Assembly: GCA_002269645.1 (NCBI GenBank)
Contig: NIVC01002740.1
Location: 62,001-126,000 of the forward strand
Length of the DNA stretch: 64,000 nucleotides
Reading direction: 5' to 3'
From: Macrostomum lignano
Taxonomy: Eukaryota
Below are positions 1,056 to 27,700 of this stretch, piece after piece. The notes beneath the pieces were generated by a model. It worked only from the letters and a program-made list of their open reading frames with translations, was not told where the DNA came from and did not search any database. A program made the translations under genes and the position numbers. The first letter of the stretch is position 1. Every line of letters starts with the position of its first letter.

Positions 1056-4000
1056 ATGACGGTATTGGGAGAAGACAGCTCAACTGGGGAGCCAGAGCAG
1101 CAGCAGGAGCAGCAACAATATTATAATAAATTCAATGGCCAGTATGAGCCAAAAGAGATTCTTGGCCGGTAAGTAGACAGCTGTTTTCTATTTCTAGAAA
1201 TCAGTTTTTCATAATGCAGACTCATTTCTGCCCGAATCCGGTTGCACAGCGGTCTCAGCAGTGTGGTCCGTCGGTGCCAGGAGCGCGCCACCAACAACTC
1301 CTTCGCTGTGAAGATCATCGACCTCAACAACCTGAATACCGACCGTCAGGAGGTTATCAGAGAGTTGAAAATCCTGCGAACGGTGCAGGGTCACCCCAGC
1401 ATCATCCGCCTGCACGACAACTTTGAGACGGAGGCCTACATCTTTTTCGTTTTTGAAATGTGAGCACTTTGTAAACAATATCTCATCTAGTCAGGAGTCA
1501 CCCAATTCTAGTCAGGGGTCACCCAATTCTAGTCAGGGTCACCCAATTCTTATTCTAGTCATGGGTCACCCAATTCTAGTCATGCGTCACCCAGTTCTCA
1601 TGGGTTTGCCCAATTCTAGTCGTGGGTCACCGAATTCTAGTCGTGGGTCACCGAATTCTAGTCGTGGGTCACCGAATTCTAGTCGTGGGTCACCGAATTC
1701 TAGTCGTGGGTCACCGAATTCTAGTCGTGGGTCACCGAATTCTAGTCGTGGGTCACCGAATTCTAGTCGTGGGTCACCGAATTCTAGTCGTGGGTCACCG
1801 AATTCTAGTCGTGGGTCACCGAATTCTAGTCGTGGGTCACCGAATTCTAGTCGTGGGTCACCGAATTCTAGTCGTGGGTCACCGAATTCTAGTCGTGGGT
1901 CACCGAATTCTAGTCGTGGGTCACCGAATTCTAGTCGTGGGTCACCGAATTCTAGTCGTGGGTCACCGAATTCTAGTCAGAGGTCACCCAATTCTATTCA
2001 TGTGTCACCCAATTCTAGTCAGGGGCCACCCAATTCTAGTCAGGGGCCACCCAATTCTAGTCAGGGGCCACCCAATTCTAGTCAGGGCCACCCAATTCTA
2101 GTAAGGGTCACCCAATTCTAGTCAGGGGCGACCCAATTCCACTTCACAGCTGTCCAAACGGCGAGCTATTCGAGCACTTGAACCGAGTGGTTCGAATGTC
2201 CGAGAAGCGCACCAGAGCTGTGTTGAAGCAGCTGCTGAGCGCTCTCGACTTTCTGCACAGTCGCAATATCGTGCACAGAGACGTGAAAGCAGAGAACATT
2301 CTTCTAGACTCCGATATGAACATCAAGCTGACGGACTTTGGCTTCGCCATTGTGATTGACAGCGATGACATGCTGACAGATTTGTGCGGCACTCCCAGCT
2401 ACCTGAGCCCCGAGATTCTCGTGGTGAACATGTTCGAGAATCGCGACATTCGCGGCTACGGCAGGTGAAGTGACTTGTTGCTGATGTACATCAAGCTTTG
2501 TTAACACTTCGTTTCTTGGAAAATATTTGAAGGCCGAATTGACAAAATCCGCTCCAACAGAAATCTAAGGCAACTTTCATGTCGCTGGCGTATTTTTCGT
2601 GTTCAGCCAGATTTTGAGATTCTAAGAAAAGAAGTCATTTTAATAAAGTCGTTCTTTAATCAAGCCTACCATAATTAATGTCACTTGATTGATAAATCTA
2701 CTACTGTTGGCACCCGTCACGCAGGCCCGTAGACCTATGGGCTAGCGGGGTGCTCATGTATACAATGCTCAGCGGGTCGCCTCCGTTCTGGCACCGTCGC
2801 CAGATGACCATGCTCAGGATGATCATGGAGGCGCGCTTCAGTCTGGACTCGCCCGACTGGGAGGAGTCCTCCGACCTCGCCAAGGACCTCATCAGGCTGC
2901 TGCTGCGGCCGAAGCCCGCGGATCGCCTCACCGCTGCTGAGGCCCTCATGCATCCGTTTCTGTCCAGAAATGTAAGGCCCGTGTTTGACTGGTGGGTTCA
3001 ACTAGCATTGGCTATCGTTGGTTTCAGCACTCTCCGTTTCCACTGCATCAGCACCCTCAGCTTCCACTGCTTCAGCACCCTCCCGTTTCCACTGCATCAG
3101 CACCCTCCCGTTTCCACTGCATCAGCACCCTCCGCTTCCACTGCATCAGCACCCTCAGCTTCCACTGCATCAGCACCCTCCCGTTTCCACTGCATCAGCA
3201 CCCTCCCGTTTCCACTGCATCAGCACCCTCAGCTTCCACTGATTCAGCACCCTCCCGTTTCCACTGCATCAGCACCCTCCCGTTTCCATTGCATCAGCAC
3301 CCTCAGCTTCCACTGATTCAGCACCCTCCCGTTTCCACTGCATCAGCACCCTCCCGTTTCCACTGCATCAGCACCCTCAGCTTCCACTGCTTCAGCACCC
3401 TCCCGTTTCCACTGCATCAGCACCCTCCCGTTTCCACTGCATCAGCACCCTCAGCTTCCACTGCTCAGCACCCTCCCGTTTCCACTGCATCAGCACCCTC
3501 CCGTTTCCACTGCATCAGCACCCTCCCGTTTCCACTGCATCAGCACCCTCAGCTTCCACTGCTTCAGCACCCTCCCGTTTCCACTGCATCAGCACCCTCA
3601 GCTTCCACTGCATCAGCACCCTCAGCTTCCACTGCATCAGCACCCTCCCGTTTCCACTGCATCAGCACCCTCCCGTTTCCACTGCATCAGCACCCTCCCG
3701 TTTCCACTGCATCAGCACCCTCCCGTTTCCACTGCATCAGCACCCTCCCGTTTCCACTGCATCAGCACCCTCAGCTTCCACTGCTTCAGCACCCTTCACT
3801 TGCATCTCCAGCACTCTCTGCTTCTGTATCTTCAGCCCCCTCCACTTCCACTGTTCTAGCCCCCCCCCCTACGCTTCCACTGCTCCAGCGCCCTCCGCTT
3901 CCATCGCTCCAGAGCCATCATCAGCTTCCACTGCTCCAGCGCTCTCAGCTTCCACTGCTCCAGTGCCCTCCGCTTCCACTGCTCTAGTGCCCTCCGCTTC

Positions 4001-4503
4001 CACTGCTCCAGAGCCATCAGCTTCCACTGCTCCAGCGCTCTCAGCTTCCACTGCTCCAGTGCCCTCCGCTTCCACTGCTCCAGTGCCCTCCGCTTCCACT
4101 GCTCCAGAGCCATCAGCTTCCACTGCTCCAGCACCCTCCGCTTCCACTGCTCATACGCTTCCGCATCTTGACCTTATTTACCGCAACCGCTCAGGACTGC
4201 CCAGCCCGCACAAGCCAGCAATCTTCATCAGCCGAAGCTGCGCGAGTCAGGTTCCGCTCTGCCGTCCTGGCGGTCCGCTGCCTGGCCCGCCTGCACCGAT
4301 GCTGCGGCACCGCTTCGCAGACGCCGCGTCGCCTACCAGCCAGTCGGCTTCGTCAGGACCCGTACGGAGTGCGCGGACTTCGCGGCCTGGTGGACTCAAC
4401 CGCCTTCCTGGTCTACGGGCACTGGGTGAAGAAGGCGGAGAGTCAGAACCGGGCTGCTCTGTTTGAGACGTCTCTGCGCAAGGAGGAGACGGTCTTGGCT
4501 TAG
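1056..4503 (+). CDS. PHKG: Phosphorylase b kinase gamma catalytic subunit; exons 1056-1168, 1250-1459, 2150-2464, 2725-2971, 4195-4503
   Basis: Spliced translation gives [61 protein letters not shown] and the C-terminal [26 protein letters not shown]...QNRAALFE typical of PHKG. All introns are GT-AG with matching phases. Confidence 0.95.
1487..2139. repeat. 21-bp minisatellite (GAATTCTAGTCGTGGGTCACC)n in PHKG intron 2
   Basis: Directly visible tandem array with a homogeneous core and degenerate edges; it produces the spurious GSPNSSR and HRILVVG ORFs. Confidence 0.95.
3024..4152. repeat. 24/25-bp minisatellites (CAGCACCCTCCCGTTTCCACTGCAT and related units) in PHKG intron 4
   Basis: Two related sub-arrays at about 3024-3795 and 3860-4152. 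Confidence 0.93.
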
Positions 4504-4589
4504 ACAATTCTCACGGCTTGTTTTTTAACCAGGGACTGTGGGCACTGATGCGAATCAAGACGACAGTCCACCTGCAGCAGGAGAATAGG

Positions 4590-5230
4590 GGTACTCATAC
4601 AGGGTGTACTCACACATGCTGTACTCATACAGGGTGTACTCATACAGGGTGTACTCACACATGCTGTACTGACAGGGTGTACTCACACAGGGTGTACTCG
4701 CACAGGGTGTACTCAAACAGGGTGTACTCATACAGAGTGTACTCACACAGTGTACTCACACAGGGTGTACTCACACAGGGTGTACTCACACAGGGTGTAC
4801 TCACACAGGGTGTACTCACACAGGGTGTACTCACACAGGGTGTACTCACACAGGGTGTACTCACACAGGGTGTACTCACACAGTGTACTCACACAGGGTG
4901 TACTCACACAGGGTGTACTCACACAGGGTGTACTCCACACAGGGTGTACTCACACAGGGTGTACTCTCACAGGGTGTACTCACACAGGGTGTACTCACAC
5001 AGGGTGTACTCACACAGGGTGTACTCACACAGGGTGTACTCACACAGGGTGTACTCACACAGGGTGTACTCACACAGGGTGTACTCACACAGGGTGTACT
5101 CACACAGGGTGTACTCACACAGTGTACTCACACAGGGTGTACTCACACAGGGTGTACTCACACAGGGTGTACTCCACACAGGGTGTACTCACACAGGGTG
5201 TACTCTCACAGGGTGTACTCATACAGGGTT
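4590..5230. repeat. 15-bp minisatellite (GTGTACTCACACAGG)n just 3' of the PHKG stop
   Basis: Visible tandem array of roughly 40 units. Confidence 0.95.
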
Positions 5231-6267
5231 GACTGAAATCACTAAGGGGGAAGGTACAAAGGGGGAAGGAGCTACTGAGGGTGAAGGTACAAGGTGTAGG
5301 TAGATGAGCCTGTCCTTAAAGTGAGGCATTCACAGATAAAGTGCTCCGCATTCGTAACACGAAGAGAGGCGGAATGAGTGCATTCCTTACTGCTGATTCC
5401 CTCTACGAGCTAGATGTAGCGATGCCTAGGACCATGGATACCGCGCGTCCTAATGTCCTTGAGATCCAGTCCAGTTAAGATTGAAATTCAGTTAACTGCG
5501 GGTCGACTGTTCACTCGGATGTGCGTTGTTTACATACATAGTATCAGTGCTCCCCCCGACACATGTACATGTACAAACAAATCAGGACTAATTTTAGCCC
5601 TTAAACCTTCTCGTATTCTTTTTGTGTTTGTTTATTAACCTTTTATCAGTGAGTTCCATTAATGTACAGCACAGCGCTCTTTACAAGCTGGCTCTATTGA
5701 AACAAAAGCGCTCAGTAACAATGTCACTACAATATGAGTATTAATTTTTGTCCTGCATGCATACTGCAAACTTATAGTTTTGTGCGTTTGAGCACTGCAG
5801 TTGGCCTAGTAAATTAAATTGTAAATTTACAAGCGCCATGCCGTCACTTTATTCAGACGCGGTAAACTACAGCTACTAAATTGTACCGTTACACTAAATG
5901 TGCATTTTGTAACACGCTTTCTTTCCTATCTTGTTGGTACATCTGGTAAATGTATATTTACACCATGCCAAGTATAAATATATGCAACTTGAGTACTGCT
6001 TAAACTAATAAAAATTATTTTACCAAGAGTAATATTTGATATATTGCGATACGGCAAATAGTTAGGCCCTACTAGACAAACCTAACAGGAGTGATTAGAG
6101 ATTTTATAAAGCTATTAGTCCTATTTGTCGGTCGGCGAGTACTACCAACCTTTCTCCAATAGCCGCAGATACGGTACAGGAAAATGAATAACACGGTTGA
6201 ATACAATTCCACATAGATTTAGATTGAGTGGTAATCCTATCTTGAAAATGATGCTTCCGAAGCATCA

Positions 6268-8767
6268 TGGCAGCTATGCTTTTTACCCCGAAAAGTACGT
6301 TGGGATTAGCGATTAGCGATTTCTCTTCATTATCTTCACTTTCTACTTAATAAGAGCTTTCTTATGTATATTTTTTTCATTATTTTTTGTCATTCCTACG
6401 CGAAAGGTCATAAACCATTATGTAGCGATTTTGAGCGATTTATGACCGCACCTGTCGTATTTTTATGGCCCTGAGGAAACTGATAGGATCTTCTGGCCAC
6501 GTGAGTTTGGGTGGTAACAAGCTCAGCCAATCAGAAAATTCGACGTGCGTTATAACAAATCGGCTCAGCCAATCAGCGTCGAGGTGTTCCATTATAACAA
6601 ATTGCGGTCCAGTTGGCGGCTATTTAAACCGGTGTTTTTGGCCCGCTCGGACTCAACCTCCTGCTCCGCCTCCTGGGACTTTGGCCTAACTTAGACCTCC
6701 TGGAGCTCGATCCCGTCGCCTCTTGATCCCCGGATCGCGACTCCCCCATCACCATCAAGGACGAATCCCCCGGTCGTCAGCAGCGAACATCAAGATTAAG
6801 AACATCACCTGCGAGCTATCTGCGAAGATCGTGACATCAGCATTATCCCGGGTCTACAGCTGCGAAGCACTAAGCCGATTCGGTCACTGTGGATTACCTG
6901 GCTGTTGAGTTTCTGATTGGTTGGGTGATAGGCTACCTAGAATTGCTTGATTGGGTGATCCCTTTGTATGTCCCCTCTTTCAGTAGCTGGATTAGGCGCA
7001 CATTTTTGCTCTTTTATTTTCAGCGGTGCTGTTATTGAGGCAGAAATCATTTAATAATACTGATAGTAGTCTGATACTCCAATTCAATCTGAAGTGTGAA
7101 GTGATTTAGTGAGAAGGTTAAATCTGATAGTTATTGTTATCGGCTTTGTTTCTTTGTTCGCCGATGGCTAAGCTAGTAGGCGCCAGTCACAGTGGACCAA
7201 TGGCAAGGCAGTCCTGTGACGTTGTCAATTTTAGTAGACCCGTCAAGGGCCGTTTTAACATACGGTACCAATCTGTAATATTGTCAATTTAATGGTCCCG
7301 TACTCTCACGTCTGCTTAAAGTAGTGGCCAAAGAATTCTAAATAACTTGCGTATGTTTGTAAGCCTCAGTACAGTAGGCGATCGATAATTTCTGTTTTTC
7401 TCGCCGGCCAATAGAAAAGCTGCGCATAAATTATAATGTTAGCCTGAAATTAAGTTCTCCGCGCGCACCCAACCCCAGCCCGCTCTTTATCAGTCCTGTC
7501 TGGCTGGGGCGCTCGGGGTTGCCCGCCTGCCTGCCTTCTCCGCTCTTCCCCCTTTCTCTGGCCTCCTTTGCTTGTTTACTCGTTAGCTAGCTTAGGCTCC
7601 TTAGACTCTTGCCACCCCGGCACTCCGTGTTTGCTTGCCTTCTCTCCGCCTCGCTCCGCCACGGTTCTAAACCACGCCTCTGCCAAGCCTCAGTCACGCC
7701 ACTCTACTGTCTGTTTGAGCTCTCGCTGCGAGCACCGCCGCCACACGTTCACACTGTCACGCTGTTACCATTGCCTCAGGCTCCTCGACTCGATCTTTCG
7801 CCTACCAGAATTTATCTATCTTAATTGTTGTGTAACCGCCAGTGCACTCCTTCCGGATTCAGCAATTACTCTGCCCTATCGCTGTTGGCCGCCCAGGCAG
7901 AACTGATAATAGCAAGCTTAACTATCCTCTTATATTGTTACAATAAACAAGACTGCGGCCATTGCTCGCAGTCTTGAATCAGTCTTGATCAGTTGTACTA
8001 TCATCAAGTGCTACCGCTACAAATTGTGCCTCTGCCGTGTTGTCTCGTTAATCATTTTCGAGTCTGCCAATTAAATCGTCACAGTCCTCAGTCGATCAAT
8101 CTATCAAATCAGTTAGCGAAATTGCCAATAGTGCAGAATCGGCTCCAGAGATGTACTCTGTGCACTCTAGGTTAGCCAAGCGGCTCGGGTAATGAATCAT
8201 GCGGTCTCCGATGTTCGAGTTAGCCTATCATCAGCGCTAGGAGAGGCTAGTTGGCGCGTTGAAGGCCAAAAGTCCAATTCCTCGTATTTAGCAATGTATT
8301 ATAGTACATGTAACTACCCCGTAGTCTAGCTCGCCACTGCAAGAATCCCCTGCACAAGTCCCCTCTGTACCTGCATGGCCAACGCGATCTAGTCCCAGCA
8401 GTGTCCCTTAACATCGGCTATGACTTCGAGATTGACAGCAAAAAGACACTAGTTGGCAAGTAATTGCTAAGCCCCCTCTAGTCGGAAGCCCGATTTCGAA
8501 AGTTCCGGTGTGGTGAGCCAGGACGCACGGGCTGTTGGCAGCGGGTTAGTTAATCTGCGGATTAGCTAATCTCTACCTTCAAAATTCTCCCTGCTTGTCT
8601 CTCGCTGTCCCTCTCTTAGCTATAGGACCTAGACTGCTCGCCACAGTTCAAGCTACCATGGGGCTGACCATCTGACAGGAGTGGGGGCCAGGGCTCTAAT
8701 TGATTTATTTCTGAGACCTGAGGCCCGAAGGCTTCCCGAAAGGGGCCGAAAGGGCCGAAACCCATCA
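6268..8767. mobile_element. LTR-like repeat copy A (about 1.63 kb plus a nested solo LTR)
   Basis: Starts TGGCAGCTATGC and ends GAAACCCATCA. Collinear with 9600-11230. Contains repeated AGCCAATCAG (CCAAT) boxes and TATTTAAA. Confidence 0.7.
7215..8083 (+). mobile_element. Solo LTR (869 bp) nested in repeat copy A
   Basis: TGTGACG...CGTCACA inverted termini; 4-bp TSD GTCC at 7211-7214 and 8084-8087; absent from copy B; AATAAA near 7942. Confidence 0.88.
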
Positions 8768-15363: not shown

Positions 15364-15662
15364 GCAAAACTATGGCTTATTCCAATTCTCCATATTCTGT
15401 AGCCATAAGGACCCTAATATTACTATATTCCCATAGTTCCCATAGCCATAGTTTTAACAAAAAGTAGATTTAAGTAGATTTAAGTAGTTTTAACAAATAG
15501 AAAACAAAATATTTTGAATCAAGAAGATAACATAGTGCTTAAACAACTGCCAATTAAGTTAGAAAATAAAAGAAACACTCAATTGCCTTTGTAAGATTAT
15601 ATTTTGTCTTTTTACAAAGCAACAATATATAATTGCTGCTGAAAATATGAATGCTAAACTTG
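15364..15662. repeat. About 290-bp dispersed repeat, copy 1 (copy 2 at about 23103-23374)
   Basis: Collinear sequence starting GCAAAACTATGGCTTATTCCAATTCTCC at both sites. Confidence 0.85.
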
Positions 15663-16155: not shown

Positions 16156-16888
16156 AACACTTCCTTAATAAAAATTATAGTTTGCTAATGGTTTATTATA
16201 CATTATTAAGGTATATTCTATAATTTTCTAAGTTGATAATATAGTTTACTAAAGTATCTTTGTTTTATTTTGTCTGTTTCTAACATTTTTTTCAATTTTT
16301 TTAAATTAATAAGTACAGCTATAAATAAGAATCTATAGAATATGACAGCAACTAGGCCTAACATATTTCTGTAGTTGTAGCCATAAGAGCAGCTAGCTAC
16401 TATAGGCATATCTATAGCTGCCATAGGCTCCTATTTTATCATGTTTGCTATAGGATACCATAGCTATAGCTATGGCTATGGTGGAACATTACATTAATAG
16501 GCCCTATTAGCAGACAAAAATGTTGTAGACAAAACATAGCAGATGAAATCACTATCAACTGCAGACTGTCACACACTCTTATTCACCATTATTCATAGCC
16601 TAGTCTTAATGACAATAAAAACATGTACCAATGACTAAACTAGGGCCTAAAATATATAAAAACTTATAATAATTTATATCATATAATTCTAAAATATAAC
16701 TGAATAATGCCTAATGGTTACATTAAAACATGATATCATAGGCCTAGGTCATAATTTTATTTAATTCAATACAATTGAATTGGGGGCCTAAGCATTCCGA
16801 TAAGTAGGCCTAGCCTAGGCCTATGCCTCTATCTAGGCCTATAGTTATTAGTTATATCCAAAACTGATTTATATATTCTAATATAATC

Positions 16889-17174
16889 CATACATGCGCA
16901 ACCTCCAAAATTTGGTCGGCCGTGCGACTTAGTTTTAACAAAAATGCGACGTAGTTTTCGGCCAAAAATGCGACTTACATGAAAAAACCTGAAAGCAAAA
17001 TTAACGCAACTTTGGGTAAACGGCAGGAGTAACTATGACTGTCTTTATTAAGGCAAAATGCTTCGTCAGCTACTTAATACTACTTTGGTATTTATTTGGG
17101 TGGGCATTTTTGCAACTTACCTTGGTTGGCCGCCAAATCAGTCGTCCATATCGGCCAACTATTGTGCATGTATG
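16889..17174. mobile_element. 286-bp MITE-like unit sharing the left TIR, with a degenerate right end
   Basis: About 17105-17174 is a direct copy of the 22705-22778 right end and finishes ATTGTGCATGTATG. Confidence 0.65.
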
Positions 17175-17614
17175 GTTTTGACTCTTGTCATTCCTTATCG
17201 TATTTGTACCCCATGTGGCACTAGAACAGTACACTTGACACGGAGTGTTTTAGGCATGATTGTACAGTGTAAGGTTGCAAAAGTGGGGAGTGGCAGAGAT
17301 ACATATGTATATATAGCTGTATGAGTATGATGGCACAAGCTAAGGCTAAGTCAATGCATGCAGAGATAAAAGCAGTCTGTAAAGCCAAATAGTGAAAGTT
17401 AACCTTAACTTATAGCACCTTGGCAGCCTATGCTGTCTGCCTGCATCTGATACGAGCATATAACTAAACTACCAAGGCAATTGGTTGTATTTACACTTTC
17501 TGTACATGAATTGGTAAAGGTAAGGGCTTTTAAATGTTTTATTTATATAGTAATACTCATAAATCAATTTTATTTTATCACCAAAATCATATACTCGACT
17601 TAATCTTTCACAGA

Positions 17615-19202
17615 ATGATGTACAGCCTTAGTTGTCTTTGCCTACTGATTCTAAGTGGCATCCTAGCTATCAATGGTATTCTAGCTGAGAGTGAGTGCTC
17701 AATTGTTATAAATGAGTTAAATACTGATGAGCCTAATATTGGATCTCAAGAATTTTCAGAGTTCATTGAGCTAAAGAAAGTTTGTTCTACAACTGCAATG
17801 CTATTAGGATCAGTGCCAGTGAGACTCCATGATTTTCTTCTGATTGGAGTTCAAGAATATAGCGGCGATTTTAGATGACCTGTGGTTTCATTTTCTGCTG
17901 ACTTCTATCGGTCCTCGGGCTTCAAAACGGACAGCAGTTTCTTTGTTATTGCATCAAAAGGGAAGCAGGAAGCAGCAGATATGTTTTTTACCGATACATC
18001 TATTGGGTATCAGGGAAAAACTAGACATGGGCTGCCAAGTTCCGCTCCTAGTAGATCATCGCAGTCATCCATCATTGATTTTTTCAAGTCTGCTAGTAAG
18101 ACAATTCCAACAGAACCAAATGCATTAAAGAATGGGAATGGTAAAAGTGCTATGGCCATTATTCTCTTGTATCAACGAGACTTTTCTAGATCAGAATCGG
18201 ACAGTTCAAGTTCCACAACTGCCAGTAGCATTGGAAAACTGCGACTAGCTAAAATGCATGCAACACAAAGAAGACCTGTTTATGAAGATAAAATTATCAT
18301 TGATAACTCATTAGCTGAAATTATTAGGAACAATAACAGGTGCACATTTTTGAGTCCATTTATCGTAGGCTAAGAGACAAGCCCAACTACATCTTAAAGC
18401 CAGCAAGAGAATGGGATGAACTTGGTCATGAGGACTATTCAATAAACCGGTGCCCTGAATCCAGCAGTGAGTTACGAAAGCCTTTGCTTTTTACAAGGTG
18501 GAAACTTGGACAGTTGACTCCAGGTAGATAAAATGACTGCTCAGGTGCTCATTGGATTTTAGAGGACAATATTGAAGCCATCATAAATACACCTTCAAGA
18601 GAAGCATGTACATTGGCAGACTCAGCATTAGCATCTGCTTCATCAGCAACAGAAAGAATCGAAATGCGACTAGCTCCTGCTCCAGCTCCATGTTCTGAAA
18701 GCTCACACCGTAGTGAATTGGCCAGGTCCTATGAATTTTCAGAGCAAATAGCAGCTAATCGAGATCATGCTGTTCAAACTGCTGCTGCAGAAACTTCTAA
18801 TTTTTGCTCTGCTGCAAATGTACAGGAAAGAAGAGAGTTGTTGGAGAATGACCAGCAAACAAGCAAACTACAAGTGGAAATTATTAGGCAAGTAAATATT
18901 CAAAGACAATCAACGAAACGATCACTTTGCCAAAGTCCTATTGTTGATTTAGATTCGAGCGACTCAAGGGGTTCAGGTGATGTTGAAATAGTACAAGTAA
19001 ATACTGCAGAAGCAGGGCCATCGCAAAGAAAAATACCATGCATAAGCACATCTGCAGACGCATGTCTAGCCACTTCAGCATCAAAGCCCTCGTCTTCCTC
19101 TATGATGGGCGAAAATATTGAAGTTTTCCCTAAAAAGGACTGGGAGGATACATCTGGTTTTCGAGAGGAGTGGTTACATTCTTTGGAGATGCACCAGTCA
19201 CA
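17615..19202 (+). pseudogene. Signal peptide + lamin-tail-like domain + Ser-rich linker, disrupted (5' exon inside the hAT element)
   Basis: MMYSLSCLCLLILSGILAINGILA followed by IVINELNTDEP...EFIELK, MAIILLY, DYSINRC and LGQLTPGR*NDCSGAHWILE. In-frame stops end at 17878 and 18531, with one frameshift near 18345. The domain call is from motif recall, not a search. Confidence 0.6.
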
Positions 19203-19333
19203 GTAAGTAAATGGAAACTGACGAACTGTAAATTAATGTATAGTGTATTGTGTATTGCACTTATTAGCATATTGCTTTTAGATACTCACAAATAGTCCAA
19301 ATCCCAAAATATTCTCTAATTTGACCATTGCAG

Positions 19334-21720
19334 ATCATTTTCAAGAAAATTTGTGTCACAAGAAATGAAGACATGGTTTCAATATGTTCAAAACACCGAA
19401 GATCTATCAAGATCTGGAATACAATGTCGGATCTGCAGAAAATTTTTGAATGCACATAAGAAAAAGGAGACAAATCTAGAGAGCCAACGTAAGTTAACTT
19501 TTGCAACAGAACAAGGCTACATTCCCAAAGGTCATGCAAAAGATAGCGTACGAAGAAAACTACAGGAACATTCATCAAATACACTTCACAGTGACGCCAT
19601 AAAGTGGATGAAGGAAAAACATACTTCAGTTCTTGCAAAGCAACTCAAACAGATGAATGAGGCCGCTAGACTAGCTAAAACTAAACGAGATGAAATAACA
19701 GCCCGAGTTTTGACAACAGTTTTTTCGCCGAAGTCAAATCTAATATTCCATTCAGTGCTCATCCAAATATGATTGATTTACAAGTAAAAAATGGGTTGGA
19801 TATGGGGAGCCATCATAAGCATCGCAAAAGTGCCGCAGCAATGGTGGAATCAATCAGTAATACAATGCATCGGACATTTGTGAATTACATTAAAAGTGCT
19901 GACAACCTTCCGATTTCTATTGTACTAGATACAACGTCTGATATTCATTCAAACAGCTACGTCATGATATACTTCAGAGTTCTTGAAAACAGCCAACCTT
20001 TGATGTTTTTTTATCGGTTTAAACGTCTGACTGAAGTAGAGACTGGACGAAGCATTTATGAACTTCTCATCCGTTTATTTTCGGATGACAAGCTAGAAGA
20101 TGAAATCAAACGAAGGCTATGGGGGTGACAACTGATGGTGCATCCGTAATGACAGGAAGTCGAGTGGGATTAATAAGTCAACTGAGGCCTTGGGCTAGCA
20201 AACAATTTTTTCAGCACCATTGTGCAGCGCATAAGTTAGAACTTTCAATCTATCATGCCTTTGAAATCTTCCCATTTATGCAACATCTCGATAAGAATAT
20301 AAATTCTCTACACAAATTTTATATGAGCCACGCTGTTAAACGTAAGGCATCTTTGGCACAAACTTCGGAAGCACTCAACTTGGTTTTCTATGAATTAAAA
20401 AGAATATATCGTATCAGGTGGGTTGCATCGGAAGTGTCTGCTCTTGATGTGATTCGAAAGTCATACTACTTGCTTCTGACAAATTTAGAAAATATCAAAT
20501 CACCTTCCTCAGGCTTTGATGACGAAAGTAAAGCAACTGCCTCTGGATTATTGAAAACATTGCAAAATGTCCGGTATTATTCATTACATCTATTTCTCAT
20601 GGACATTCTAAAATTACTGGAATTTGAGTCCTTGCAGTTTCAAAGAGCCAAGGGTACATTTATTGGCTTGCAAGAACGCCACACTAACCTTATCCATTCA
20701 CTAGAAACCTTAAAAACGAACAATGGTCCTCGCATTGTGGACTTTTTGGCTTCCTGCAAGTGTCGTCGAGTTTTGGGAACTGCAGATGGATATCCGCAGC
20801 TGGAATACCATTCAGGATGTCACACAAGAGACCTATCTTATTCTAACTTTGCTTGTCCTTCCGGCCCTGGAAGCAGCGATCCAACAGAGAGGTTTGAGTT
20901 GAAGCAACCAGGTTCTGCTGCAGACAGATCTCTAAGAAATAGATTATTTGATGCTAGTGGACGTGGCAGTGTTGTTGACATGGGAGCTTATCCAGCACTG
21001 GATGAGATTCGCAGTCGAATCATTGATAGCATAATTGATCAGCTGCGTAATTATTTTTCTGAGGATGACTACTCAATATTTAATGTGCTCAACCCAGTGT
21101 TATTGCCTAATGCTGAAACATTACATACTGTCTTTACATACAGTTCGAGAATCATACCTCTTGCTAGACGGTTTGGAATGGAAGATGACAGCTCTGAATC
21201 TGAAACAGAGGACCATCTTTCTGATTCAGACTCTAGAGATGCAGATGCTTCAGAACGCGCTACAGAAAGGACAATCTCTGGTCAGTTCGGTCTACTCCTA
21301 AAAAGTTTGATCACTTCGCATAGTGTTGACTTCTGTGCCTACAAAGGCAAAGGTCCGGTGAAATTTTGGAGTCACTTTCTAGAGACAAGAACTGTTGAAT
21401 GGCTGCCCAGAATAAAGAATCTAATTATGGTTGTGTTAACTTTGCCAATATCATCAGCTGAGGCTAAAAGAGGGTTTTCTATCTATAAGCACATTGCCTA
21501 TGACAGGAGAACACGCTTGGCACCAAAAACATTGGAGCATCTACTACGGATTCGAATAAATGGGCCTCCGCTGATGAAATTTAAGCCGGATATTTATGTC
21601 AATGATTGGCTGAAAAAACACTGGCGTTCTGATGCTCCTGGAGGTCAACGGCAAAAAGAATCCAACGTAGACGAGGAAAATAAAGATTCTGATTCTGATT
21701 TGCTAAGTGGACTATTTTAA
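19334..21720 (+). pseudogene. hAT transposase (ZNF862-like) with an N-terminal zinc-finger-like segment, frameshifted
   Basis: WFQYV...QCRICRK, IVLDTTSD, TTDGASVMTG, HHCAAH, RIRWVAS, LPISSAEAKRGFS and RRTRL motifs. Frameshifts near 19725 and 20118. The catalytic Glu position reads K. Confidence 0.9.
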
Positions 21721-22069
21721 AAGTTTTTTATCAGTTTTAATCTGCTACAATTTTAATCAATTATTACAATGGTACATGCATAATCATTAAGACTACAGTT
21801 CTTCTAAGTTCATATATAAGACCGTTAGAATCTTGCAGTTTTAATTTGCTAATTAAATATTATTAAAAGTATGATTTGCAATTGTAATAGGGCTGAAAAA
21901 TTACTGCTTATAAGTTATTCTATCCCTATTTCTATTCCTTAGCCATTTCTGGCTTCGTAATTCTTAATTTTTCAAATTGATGCGTTAATGCACACGTAGC
22001 CTACACCCTAGTAAGTGATACATTAAATTCATCCTAAACTAATCCTAACCTAATAATCCTAAAGATGCT

Positions 22070-22560
22070 CTGCGACTTAACTCAGTCCTGCTGCGACTTA
22101 CCTCGGCCCTGCTGCGACTTACTCGGTCCTGCTGCGACTTAGCTCGCCCTCGGTGCGACTTAGCTCTCGCTCGGTGCGACTTAGCTCGCCCTCGGTGCGA
22201 CTTAGCTTGGTCCTGCTGCGACTTAGTGCGACTTAGCTCTCGCTCGGTGCGACTTAGTTCGCCCTCGGTGCGACTTAGCTCGGTCCTGCTGCGACTTAGC
22301 TCGCCCTCGGTGCGACTTAGCTCGGTCCTGCTGCGACTTAGCTCGCCCTCGGTGCGACTTAGCTCGGTCCTGCTGCGACTTAGTGCGACTTAGCTCTCGC
22401 TCGGTGCGACTTATTTTGCCCTCGGTGCGACTTAGCTCGCCCTTAGTGCGACTTAGCTCTCGCTCGGTGCGACTTAGTTCGCCCTCGATGCGACTTAGCT
22501 CGGTCCTGCTGCGACTTAGCTTGCCCTCGGTGCGACTTAGCTCGCCCTCGGTGCGACTTA
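22070..22560. repeat. Expanded subterminal array of TGCGACTTAGCTCG units (about 21-22 bp) inside the hAT right end
   Basis: Visible array; the same TGCGACTTA core occurs at 16925-16980. Confidence 0.9.
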
Positions 22561-23102
22561 CCTTGTCTTCAGTGCTGCAACTTACAGCACTTACAACTCT
22601 TTTTGTGTTTTTCTCTTTCTCTTTGCTCCCTTTTTCTCGTTTTTTCCTTTTCCTTTCCCCTTTTTCGTCTTTTGTTTTTTCGTTTTTTTTGGCGGTTAAT
22701 CAATTTTGCGACTTACTTGGTTGGCCGCCAAATCGGTCGGCCGGATCGGCCGACTCGGCCGACTGTTGCGCATGTATGTGCACTCTAAAAGAACAAATTT
22801 TAGTGGACTTTTTAGAGACCTATCTTGTTAAGATGTAAAACTTTATTTTTGTTTTTTTATACCAAATCACTCAACTGGATGTCCTATATTTGAAAACACC
22901 AAGATCCAGCTAATTGGGTCATTAATAACTTGCCCAAGTGCCAAAAAGTACCTAAAAATGACATTTTTTGAAAACTATATTATATTTTTAAAAAGTAGTC
23001 CCCAAAGTTAAGAAAGTGTTTTATGCTATGGTGTTAAGACTTTAGCATAATGTGTAGTGTTCCGCCGTAAGGAGGGTCCATGTACCATAGCCATAGCGAT
23101 AA

Positions 23103-23374
23103 GCAAAACTATGGCTTATTCCAATTCTCCATATTCTGTAGCCGTAGGGACCCCAATATTATCATATTCCCATAGTTCCCGTAGCCATAGCCGTAGTTTT
23201 AACAAAACGTATAGAAAACAAAATATTTTGAATCAAGAAGATAACCTAGTGCTTAAACAACTGCAAATTAAGTTAGAAAATAAAAGAAGCACTCAATTGC
23301 CTTTGTAAGATTATATTTTGTCTTTTTTGAGAGCAACAATACTTAATCATTACTGAAAGTACTAATGCTGAACT
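23103..23374. repeat. About 290-bp dispersed repeat, copy 2
   Basis: Matches 15364-15662. Confidence 0.85.
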
Positions 23375-23740
23375 TTTTCACATTAATAAATTTTCATATT
23401 AGCTACAGCTACGGCGGAACACTAATAAAGTGTCAAAGTATAGAAATTAAATTTCCTAGATTTTCTAAACATTTGGAACTACCTATGTGGAGCAATGGCC
23501 TAGAAACCGACGAAAAAAGGCCAAGGGCTTGACCAAAAATCAGACGTTAAGGAAATTTTTAAAAAATAAGATGAATATTTTTGAGTGTGGTGTCATATTT
23601 AAAGTTAAGTAAAACTCTTGTAATTTTTAAAAGAATGTGTTTTAAAAAAGTTGGTGTTATAAACAATTTTTAGGGCACAAGTCTAAACTAAATGGATTCC
23701 AGATAAAGAAAAATTATGGGGTATCAAGATGATTGTTTCA

Positions 23741-24716: not shown

Positions 24717-27700
24717 ATGCAGACTTTAATAACAAATTGCTTGAGCACAAACGCAAAAAACAACAATAACAAAATCAGACAGCGGCTTTGGCTTCGCTGC
24801 TGGCGGATGTCGCAGTTCGTACGACTATCAGCTGCCACCTCCAGCTGCTGGATTCGGGCATCGTCAGCAGCAACAGCGTCTGGATCGCGACAGGTCTCCA
24901 ATTCGACCTGGTGGTGGTTGTGGTGATGTGGGCGATGGCTCTAGCAGAGCTCGCGGGGGTAAGTGGAAAGCTCTTAGGAACCGTTCGAAACACGCGACAA
25001 TCTGGGGCTTGTACATGAAATATTGGTTTCTAGGGCTTTTAGTTAGAAGCAGCAAGGAGCTGTGTGGACCCTGGCGCACTTTAAGCGACATTGTCACACA
25101 ACCGGCGAGAGGCATTGCTTCCCGTTCCACCGACTCCCCTGAGCAGGCACACAAGCGCGTATACATACGCAGTCATATGCATAGACACACACTAGCTTTA
25201 TTTATCGTTAAGCAAGTACACTTCACTTAACGATTCCAATTTAGCCCCAAATGATCGAATGTGACTGCACTTAGGATCGAGCCTAGACCGCTGGCACATG
25301 AGAGGGCCGCGCTTGACTCACTGACTCATGATAAGAAGTTTAAGGGATCAATGCTGCTGTACACCCTGTGTGCGTGCTCAGGAGCCTGCAGAATGAGCAT
25401 AACTGCTTGCCTTCTCACTGTTTGCGGTTAGACTGTTGTTTTGATTTGGTTAAAAACCGCTCTGATCTGACCAATCTGTCTACAATTGCACCCATAGGAG
25501 GTGGCAATTCGATTCGTTCGCGCATCACAGAGGAGCCGCGGGGCTGGGAGCAGGACGAATCCGTGCGGCTAGATCTATACAACAGCGATCTCTGGCTAAT
25601 GATTGATACTGACGGTGTCAATGCCAAACCATTTAGTCATGGCGGCTTTGCTAACATGTGGGCTGGCGCTCAGGCTACCTATGCCGCTAGGCGGGGGCGC
25701 GTGTTTTACGAGGTGCGTAAGGCTTGCTGATTCTGGCTTCGATTATTGAGTTTTTCATTGATTAAGGGGGTTACAGCAGATTGGTGCCAGTGGAATGAGG
25801 TGGGTGTCAGTGGAGTGAGGTTGGTGTCAGTGGAGTGAGGTTGGTGTCAGTGGAGTGAGGTGGGTGTCAGTGGAGTGAGGTGGGTGTCAGTGGAGTGAGG
25901 TTGGTGTCAGTGGAGTGAGGTTGGTGTCGGTGGAGTGAAACTACACACGCGGCATCACAGGGTCACTCACTCCTCGAATCCCAGGTGCGGATCGGGCAGA
26001 ACAATCGCGACGTCTCGGCGCCGCCGGAGGAGCGGTTGATGTTCCTGCTGCGCTGCGGCTGGTCGCCATTAGGCGCCGGCATGGTGCTGGGCGAGGAGCC
26101 GCTGTCTTACGGCTACGGCGGCTCCGGCAAAGCTAGCACTGATTCGCAGTTCAAGGACTACGGCGGTCCCTTTGACTCTGGCGATGTTGTCGGCTGTTTT
26201 CTGGTAATTTGCTTATTATAGTTTTTTTAAACGAACTTAAAAAAGCTTGGAATGTTTTTGAAGTGTGTATTTGAAATTTCACTGCATCAACTTTGATAAT
26301 TGCAGTTTATTAACAAAGATTCGCGCATTTTAAAGCAGTTTTGTTAAGAATTGCTTTTGAATTAAATTGAATCGTTTTTAATCTGCCTTCAAAGACCATC
26401 CTTAATGCATCCTGATACTGAGAATCATCTAATATCTACCCTTAGAATCGCTCTTAATCTACCCTAAGAATCGCTCTTAATCCACCCTAAGAATCGCTCT
26501 TAATCCACCCTAAGAATCGCTCTTAATCTACCGTGAGAATTGCCCTTTATCTACTCTGAAAATTGCCCTTAATCTACCCTGAGAATCGCCCTCAATCTAT
26601 TTTGAGAATCGCCTTAAATCTACCCTGAGAATCGCTAGATTGCCCCGAGAATCGCCTTCAATCTACCCTGAGAATCGCTCACAATCTACCGTGAGAATCG
26701 CCCTTTATCTACTCTAAAAATTGCCCTTAATATACCCTGAGAGTCGCCCTTAATCTACCGTTAGAATTGCCCTTAATCTACCCTAAGAATCGCTCTTAAT
26801 CTACCCTAAGAATCGCTCTTAATCTACCCTAAGAATCGCTCTTAATCTACCCTAAGAATCGCTCTTAATCTACCCTAAGAAAAGCTCTTAATCTACCCTA
26901 AGAATCGCTCTTAATCTACCCTGAGAATCGCCCTCAATCTACTCTGAAAATTTCCCTTAATCTACCGTTAGAATTGCCCTTAATCTACCCTGAGAATCAT
27001 TCGTAATCTACCGTTAGAATTTCCCTTAATCTACCCTGAGAATCGCCCTCAATCTACCCTGAGAGTCGCCCTTAATCTACCCTGAAAATCGCCCTTAATC
27101 TACCGGGAGGATCGCCCTTTATCTACTCTGAGAATCGCCCTCAATCTATCTTGAGAATCGCCCTCAACCTATCCTGAGAATCGCCCTCAATCTACCCTGA
27201 GAATCGCCCTCAATCTACCCTGAGAATCGCCCTCAATCTACCCTGAGAATCGCCCTCAATCTATCCTGAGAATCGCCCTCAATCTATCCTGAGAATCGCC
27301 CTCAATCTATCCTGAGAATCGCCCTCAATCTATCCTGAGAATCGCCCTCAATCTATCTTGAGAATCTTCCTCAATGTATCTTGACAGTCGGTCGCTCTAT
27401 GTTCATTACCAATGCTCAATTTCTCGCGCAGGAGTACCGCGATGACGGCGTGCCGATCATCTCGTACGCTCTGGACGGGCGCAGCCTCGGCGTCTGCTAC
27501 ATGGCCAATGAGGCCCGCAATAAGCCGCTGTTTCCGCACCTGCTAACTAAAAATGTGCAGTTCGAAGTCAACTTTGGTCAGCGCAAGTGAGTCATTCATC
27601 CCAGTCTGAAAACTTTCTAGTTCTTTAGGTTTTAATATTAATATTAACTTGCAGTTTTAAAATCTCCAAGATTTGAGTAGTTGCAGTTTCAAAATCTGCA

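Follow-up and report, generated by a model that had tools for sequence, protein, structure and literature searches.

The window that we analyzed is a 64,000-nucleotide stretch of the Macrostomum lignano genome (positions 62,001 to 126,000 of contig NIVC01002740.1, assembly GCA_002269645.1). On its forward strand, from 16889 to 22778, lies a complete, non-autonomous or dead copy of a hAT DNA transposon (5,890 bp; delimited by comparison with two other copies, L010 and L012). We think it likely, from sequence comparisons, that this is a decayed and recently mobilised member of the Buster/FAM200-like hATs, and that its single gene encoded one transposase that starts with a hydrophobic leader and a lamin-tail domain (LTD). 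We also think that this N-terminal module is an integral and selected part of the transposase across a whole clade. Splicing of a phase-2 GT-AG intron would yield one long protein (~1,320 amino acids). In order, it would contain a cleavable-looking leader, a divergent LTD, a disordered linker with a cluster that resembles a nuclear localization signal (NLS), a WE..F..W motif, a BED-like zinc finger, an RNase-H-like DDE core, and a dimerisation domain. On this reading, the leader and LTD are not a cargo gene, nor are they an isolated chimera. The core would excise and insert the element as in other hATs, and the LTD may be an accessory domain that binds DNA, chromatin, or another partner.

The gene in the window

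We translated positions 17500-21800 in three frames and recovered every feature that an earlier note had read from the sequence alone. These include an ATG after an acceptor-like site, a hydrophobic leader, a series of LTD-like motifs, and a Ser-rich linker. All features of the element are given for the + strand. The start ATG is at 17615, immediately downstream of ...TTTCACAG. Just before it there may be either an intron in the 5' untranslated region (17520-17613, GTAAGG...TTTCACAG) or a trans-splice acceptor. The donor-like GTAAGG (at 17520) and the acceptor-like site (which ends at 17613) are both kept in L001, a relative that is 89% identical. Trans-splicing is frequent among M. lignano mRNAs (PMC5730564).

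Exon 1 (17615-19202) has four parts. The signal-peptide-like leader (MMYSLSCLCLLILSGILAINGILAES, 17615-17692) was recognized by its hydropathy and by comparison with related modules. The divergent LTD, with long insertions (17693-18570), was identified using hhalign. Its motifs run from ECSIVINELNTDEP..EFIELK (that is, IVINELNTDEP...EFIELK) through AIILLY and SINRC to TPG..NDC, and then comes a low-complexity linker that is rich in Ser and Ala (18571-19134). The linker includes the basic, NLS-like cluster SQRKIPC (19021-19041), which reads SQRKRPC or ERKRPC in intact relatives. In most relatives, a basic cluster lies 10-35 residues upstream of the WE motif. The exon ends with this conserved 'WE...F...W' motif (KDWEDTSGFREEWLHSLEMHQSQ, 19135-19202).

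The 131-bp intron (19203-19333) has a GTAAGT donor and a TTGCAG acceptor and is in phase 2 on both sides, so that the spliced junction reads ...HQSQ|SFSRKFVSQEMKTWFQY... (HQSQ|SFSRKF). Exon 2 (19334-21720, with the stop TAA at 21718-21720) encodes the zinc finger and the hAT transposase. An internal Met (MKTWFQY...) is at 19365, just 3' of the intron. The BED-like CxxC...HxxxxxH finger is at approximately 19425-19600, the first catalytic D is at 19928-19930, the second D is at 20134-20136, and the dimerisation region is at approximately 21406-21555. Exon 2 matches the Pfam model Dimer_Tnp_hAT (PF05699; 27 bits, E = 3.8e-6, cut-off 21.4 bits). Precomputed annotations place FAM200-ZBED5_RNase-like (PF27073) on a near-identical protein (P0005) and on P0006 and P0195. 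The pattern CxxC...H-x5-H is conserved across the relatives; the Pfam search gave no BED match. P0005 is an M. lignano protein from GenBank and the product of another copy. Over the best aligned stretch, the window's transposase is 100% identical to P0005, and the full comparison shows a few differences.

The same fusion in relatives

The earlier note had proposed that the intron joins the two parts in frame, and the relatives bear this out. A relative from a public sequencing run (L005/L006, 69% nucleotide identity) has the same order of parts, with a GT-AG phase-2 intron at the same place. A sister family in M. lignano (L011, 72% nucleotide identity) has a fully open gene. Its product is GenBank PAA51197.1 (P0195; 1,313 amino acids), whose annotated coding sequence joins exon 4001-5629 to exon 5734-8043 (L011 coordinates) across a 104-bp GT-AG phase-2 intron. 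This intron is homologous in position to the window's intron. PAA51197.1 has the leader, the LTD, the linker, ERKRPC, the WE motif, the zinc finger, and the transposase with its catalytic E. The M. lignano annotation that carries PAA51197.1 was built from a genome-guided assembly of RNA-seq reads (PMC5730564).

The fusion is also found in distant relatives. In a metagenomic contig (L007, ~30% amino-acid identity), we found the same series: the leader MKLIVTVIFMFAFNF, CKIVINEVN..EFIELR, ...LNRC...TPGADNDC, the WE motif, the finger, and the transposase. The introns of L007 are elsewhere, and the frame is maintained across every one. With a profile of the module, we matched 199 clusters at E ≤ 1e-3 among 1.84 billion representatives. 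Many of these relatives are uninterrupted open reading frames (ORFs) of about 1,000-1,250 amino acids, among them ORFs of 1,086-1,217 amino acids, and have the module N-terminally and PF05699 C-terminally. This is the combination of an LTD-like domain and a hAT transposase for which the note had suggested searching proteomes. Among the matches listed, 44 reach at least 200 amino acids past the module, and 40 of these continue into homology with the WE motif, the finger, and the transposase. (We also searched 5.8 billion proteins with a query that spans the junction. No match crossed the junction; PAA51197.1 surfaced in the cluster listing instead.)

When the conceptual spliced proteins from the window and from L005 are aligned to 18 relatives that read through this region, the junction has no gaps. 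The WE..F..W motif is encoded before the intron; in these 18 relatives, it runs continuously into the zinc finger and is part of the N-terminus of the transposase in all of them, including one with just 27% identity (P0009). Given the 199 relatives of the module and the gap-free junction, these alignments show that the fusion is not due to chance and is not an accident of the window's copy. Rather, the architecture is old, widespread, and selected, and it typifies a clade of transposases. So, the earlier note's idea of an ancestral chimera between a secreted-type module and a transposase is supported, except that the chimera is not specific to this element: it is an ancient trait of the clade.

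A divergent lamin-tail domain under selection

The earlier note had described the N-terminal module as lamin-tail-like from its motifs. With hhalign, an alignment of 47 modules (A4) matches six LTD repeats from an amphioxus protein (P0125) with a probability of 99.45% and E = 5e-22, across 183 of 184 columns and with every LTD signature motif aligned. P0125 has eight genuine LTDs according to Pfam (E = 7.5e-95). Profiles of the module also match P0125 (E = 5e-9), and a further profile search, which covered 8,000 candidates, matched bacterial PF00932 proteins (E = 1e-26 to 1e-11); its only new additions were these bacterial LTD proteins. Both halves of the module match bona fide LTDs. Because the profile-profile comparison matches genuine LTD repeats, we conclude that the module is a true LTD, albeit a divergent one with long insertions.

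Given the 47-sequence alignment, AlphaFold2 predicted a mainly-beta structure with good confidence (pLDDT = 82.8, pTM = 0.83). We used this model instead of one built from a 4-sequence alignment, which had pLDDT = 35. Sequence searches of the PDB with the module profiles and with an intact full-length member found nothing meaningful. For the genuine amphioxus repeats, the best match in the PDB (E = 0.0027) was to an unrelated protein with a cystatin-like fold.

Some relatives (P0041 and P0110) have part of a further LTD, its C-terminal half, in front of the complete module, so the number of LTDs in the N-terminal region seems to vary. (The extra half in P0041 starts at the first residue and may be cut.)

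To quantify selection, we compared the window's family to the PAA51197.1 family. The ratio of nonsynonymous to synonymous substitution rates (dN/dS) was 0.13 for the LTD, 0.40 for the linker, 0.14 for the WE motif, and 0.14 for the transposase. Between families, dN/dS for the LTD was 0.13-0.19, and the linker was relaxed (0.35-0.53). Since the LTD and the transposase have such similar ratios for the same pair of families (0.13 vs. 0.14), purifying selection on the LTD is as strong as on the enzyme itself.

A recently mobile transposon and its dead copies

The earlier note was right that the element is bounded by terminal inverted repeats (TIRs). The left TIR (CATACATGCGCAAC, 16889-16902) and the right TIR (GTTGCGCATGTATG, 22765-22778) are perfect 14-bp inverted matches to each other. 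On another M. lignano scaffold, L010 is 99.8% identical to the window over exactly 16889-22778, and the sequence outside of these limits is unrelated. L012 is 97.3% identical to the window's element and has the same left end. The termini of the element recur in L010, L012, and two copies from sister families (L011 and L008), and each of these has a perfect 8-bp target site duplication (TSD): CTTGGGTT for L010, GCAACTAG for L012, TAACATCC for L011, and AATTTAAA for L008. The near-identical copies at separate loci, the TIRs, and the TSDs of the other copies show that the window's element is a bona fide hAT transposon that was mobile recently. The element is multi-copy, and at least 18 near-identical variants of the protein are annotated in M. 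lignano. We considered whether the gene might be a domesticated, single-copy fusion of a host gene and a transposase, but the multi-copy state, the TIRs, and the TSDs rule this out.

The window's copy is dead and encodes nothing functional. As had been noted before, it has two stops, three frameshifts, and a substitution of the catalytic E by K. The LTD contains a TGA (17876-17878), a TAA (18529-18531), and a 1-bp loss in a run of T (18347-18351). Exon 2 contains a +2 bp frameshift (near 19719-19729) and a 1-bp loss in a run of G (20121-20125). The codon for the catalytic E is now AAA (21466-21468); this E is intact in P0189 and P0195. To these defects we add a 39-bp in-frame deletion at approximately 18334/18335. 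L010 shares the 39-bp deletion, the frameshift in the T-run, the TAA, the +2 frameshift, and the change from E to K, and it lacks the other two defects of the window's copy. Since the window and L010 have several defects in common and are 99.8% identical at separate loci, a defective master copy was probably moved in trans, with transposase supplied by an intact relative (for example, the 1,313-amino-acid gene in L011).

The L011 copy itself (L011 2539-8902, on NIVC01003487.1; 6,364 bp) is apparently fully intact, with TIRs, the TSD TAACATCC, and the open gene. This copy is a candidate for an autonomous element, and the transposase that moved the dead copies might have come from it.

One site seems to be damaged repeatedly. 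ACA TTT TTT GAG (..CTFFE..) was struck three times independently. The window and L010 have lost one T from this run (window 18347-18351). The codon after ..CTFF has changed from GAG to TAG in L012 (~3985-3990) and from GAA to TAA in L005 and L006 (~1100-1108). We rejected programmed recoding at this recurrent stop, as the frame beyond it does not change and a T-run precedes the site. As a simpler reading, it looks like a hotspot for homopolymer-linked mutations or for sequencing errors.

The leader and the location of the protein

We considered a leader to be hydrophobic if it had a 10-residue stretch with mean hydropathy of at least 2.2. In 57 relatives, 15 or more residues precede the LTD; such a segment is found in 45 of them, as compared to 1.6% of length-matched control windows. 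The window's leader (MMYSLSCLCLLILSGILAINGILA-ES) fits the pattern of a signal peptide, in which a hydrophobic h-region of about 8-16 residues comes after a Met (and often K or R) and before small residues. The leaders of the relatives are unrelated in sequence while their hydrophobic character is retained. Ahead of the transposase core, no segment other than the leader is strongly hydrophobic, and we found no transmembrane-like segment between the LTD and the zinc finger.

Secreted LTD proteins from bacteria (P0173 and P0177) and from amphioxus (P0125) have a signal peptide that runs straight into VVINE(L/V)N. Because bona fide secreted LTD proteins start in this way, the module probably arose by capture of the 5' end of a gene for such a protein (its signal peptide and first LTD). 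Among the cysteines of the module, C293 and C322 are invariant, C256 is conserved in at least 90% of sequences, and C28 is in the consensus. In extracellular LTD repeats, the counterpart of C293 and C322 is the RC...N.C pair. Our preferred explanation is that the leader competes with the NLS, which would set how much of the protein reaches the nucleus (dual targeting).

Another explanation, which we consider possible but doubtful, is that the leader is an inert or structural relic, or else a weak membrane-tethering helix. The protein would be cytosolic and would be imported via its NLS, and the LTD would bind DNA, chromatin, or the lamina, purely in the nucleus. The NLS-like cluster is conserved, a transposase has to reach chromatin, the LTDs of lamins act in the nucleus, and there is no transmembrane segment that would split the halves between compartments. 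However, transposons evolve quickly, and a useless or harmful leader should vanish fast, yet it persists in 45 of the 57 clusters. Hydrophobicity that is kept without conservation of the sequence is typical of working signal peptides. Also, the conserved cysteines (C293 and C322 resemble the extracellular pair) suggest folding in an oxidising compartment.

The missing transmembrane segment also led us to reject a type I membrane topology, with the LTD in the lumen and the transposase in the nucleoplasm. It is quite improbable that the leader is a working signal peptide in the sense that the transposase transits the secretory pathway and reaches nuclei by retrotranslocation or by secretion and uptake. 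If this were true, then transposase made in somatic cells, for instance, could be delivered to germ cells and mobilise the genomic copies there. The element would escape germline RNA-based silencing of its own mRNA, and a DNA transposon would have a route between cells at the protein level.

One product or two

The earlier note also raised the possibility that processed transcripts give a secreted cargo protein and, separately, a transposase. Intron retention or early polyadenylation would give a secreted protein with the leader, the LTD, and the linker, while translation of the transposase would begin at the Met at 19365. A retained intron does stop translation at once (..CAG TAA), as in ORFs P0001 and P0002 and in L005, but a phase-2 GTAAGT donor necessarily produces this stop. 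The M. lignano families share the Met that follows the intron, and several GenBank models begin there (P0006, P0189, and P0182). In distant relatives, though, a single uninterrupted ORF has neither a stop nor a conserved Met at that place. The position of the WE..F..W motif is also hard to explain: it lies upstream of the intron, and yet in the aligned read-through relatives it belongs to the N-terminus of the transposase. In L007, an in-frame intron at a different place connects the LTD with the exon for the transposase, and PAA51197.1 is annotated as the full fusion. Overall, two products are unlikely. A secreted LTD protein may exist as a minor isoform, but it cannot be what the gene mainly encodes.

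We give almost no credence to an accident in the M. lignano genome, in which a hAT landed beside a host gene for a secreted LTD protein, or captured an exon from it, and the in-frame intron is a coincidence or an artefact: hATs are known to capture host fragments, and the window's copy alone could not rule out a chance juxtaposition, but in all copies the TIRs enclose the module, which accompanies the transposase in four or more lineages from M. lignano or its relatives and in numerous distant sequences, is under purifying selection, and has a junction that is colinear with the read-through relatives. The relatives, the gap-free junction, and the selection exclude chance juxtaposition of an LTD exon and a hAT.

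Several results do weigh against a single leader-and-LTD transposase in a mobile element. First, the leader is signal-peptide-like, and its putative role is argued from hydropathy and from analogy with secreted LTD proteins. Second, a cleaved signal for the endoplasmic reticulum is mechanistically awkward on a soluble nuclear enzyme, given that no transmembrane segment separates the halves. Third, RNA support for the junction is second-hand: it comes via the GenBank model from the 72%-identical sister family, and so would apply to the window by homology. Fourth, the Pfam LTD model (PF00932) did not match the window's module, the members of the alignment A3, or ten relatives (E up to 10 or 0.1). 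Similarly, when we compared the predicted structure to the PDB with Foldseek, there was no LTD entry among the hits, just weak matches to immunoglobulin variable domains (E ≥ 0.06, TM ≤ 0.40). For this model, the Foldseek result neither confirms nor contradicts an LTD fold, so the AlphaFold check that the earlier note had in mind gave a confident mainly-beta model but not a structural match to LTDs. Fifth, the window's copy has no TSD: the flanks at 16881-16888 and 22779-22786 differ (ATATAATC vs. TGCACTCT). Finally, we found no convincing TIRs or TSDs around four distant metagenomic relatives (L007, L009, L013, and L014), so mobility is not established there. (The distant relatives were drawn from Logan, ENA, or JGI assemblies.)

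Possible causes of the missing TSD in the window include recombination between copies, a rearranged flank, or an assembly join.

Other features of the element and its surroundings

The 5' end of the element is a MITE-like segment (miniature inverted-repeat transposable element; 16889-17174, 286 bp). It includes a second copy of the element's right end (ATTGTGCATGTATG, 17161-17174) and TGCGACTTA subterminal repeats. Positions 17105-17174 and 22701-22778 form a repeat in direct orientation. A solo copy of the MITE, 297 bp long and ~90% identical, lies in the opposite orientation at 9122-9418 of L011, with a perfect TSD (TCCAGAAA). Homology to L001 begins exactly at 17175. Because the 5' unit is complete, a solo copy exists, and homology to L001 starts where the unit ends, the window's subfamily may descend from a 5'-truncated element that was rescued by the left end of an adjacent MITE.

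The 3' end of the element includes a subterminal minisatellite (22070-22560) with 21- or 42-bp units (TGCGACTTAGCTCG...). The units contain TGCGACTTAG, and the same motif is also found at 16923-16978. The number of units differs among the copies, and in L012 the minisatellite extends to ~1.9 kb. These units may be subterminal repeats to which the transposase binds.

The element is flanked by a direct repeat of ~300 bp (82% identical), at 15364-15661 (~1.2 kb upstream) and 23103-23375 (~0.3 kb downstream). These are probably two copies of another repeat family. There is also a tandem repeat of 20 bp (TTGGTGTCAGTGGAGTGAGG) at 25781-25938 (7.9 copies, 94% matches).

Significance and comparison with known systems

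Full-text searches of the literature found no paper that links LTDs or signal peptides with hATs or other eukaryotic DNA transposases, so this conserved architecture is apparently undescribed. In the databases, these proteins are described as just "hypothetical" or "HAT C-terminal dimerisation domain-containing," and most of the M. lignano gene models begin 3' of the intron. Current models thus break these elements into "hypothetical" fragments that lack the LTD. The fusion gives a well-studied superfamily a new domain architecture, and gives the poorly understood LTD a new and testable context. For transposon biology, the interest is that a secretory leader conflicts with a nuclear function: how and why would a protein with a signal peptide act on chromatin? 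As transgenesis is available in M. lignano and PAA51197.1 is intact, assays of localisation and transposition are practical.

DNA transposases are nuclear enzymes whose N-termini are DNA-binding fingers, and hATs normally start with a zinc finger. The closest known systems are the Buster-type hATs (TcBuster and AeBuster, and also FAM200, ZBED5, KIAA1586, and ZMYM6; PF27073, PF14291, and PF05699). Like them, the window's family has a DDE core with an insertion domain, a C-terminal dimerisation region, a CxxC...H...H finger before the core, short TIRs, and 8-bp TSDs. Known Buster-type members begin at or near the zinc finger and have ~600-800 amino acids, whereas the window's clade adds ~550 residues at the N-terminus (the leader, the LTD, the linker, and the WE motif).

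The module itself resembles LTD proteins (PF00932), which include lamins, secreted bacterial proteins, and a multi-LTD membrane protein from amphioxus (XP_035693005). The motifs VINE(L/V)N, EFIEL, FVIG, NG..A..LY, VD.v.Y.R, S.NRC, and TPG..N.C are colinear, and, as in the secreted LTD proteins, a signal-peptide-like leader abuts the first strand. But because of the long insertions, the window's module has ~300 amino acids (instead of ~110-185) and falls below the Pfam LTD model. Also, it is fused to a transposase.

A leader at the N-terminus and an internal basic cluster for nuclear targeting are found in one polypeptide in FGF3 and PTHrP as well. These proteins have a signal peptide and an NLS, and either signal competition or alternative initiation gives them dual fates. 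They are not homologous to the window's transposase, for which dual targeting is hypothetical.

Finally, a host-type domain that is spliced to a transposase recalls exon capture by DNA transposons and the fusions of host genes with transposases (for example, SETMAR and the KRAB- or SCAN-ZBED genes). Here too, a captured 5' end of a host (or bacterial) gene is the probable source of the module. The SETMAR-type fusions are domesticated host genes, present in a single copy and no longer bounded by TIRs. In contrast, the fusion described here is carried inside multi-copy elements that are mobile and have TIRs and TSDs, and a whole clade of transposons has conserved it.

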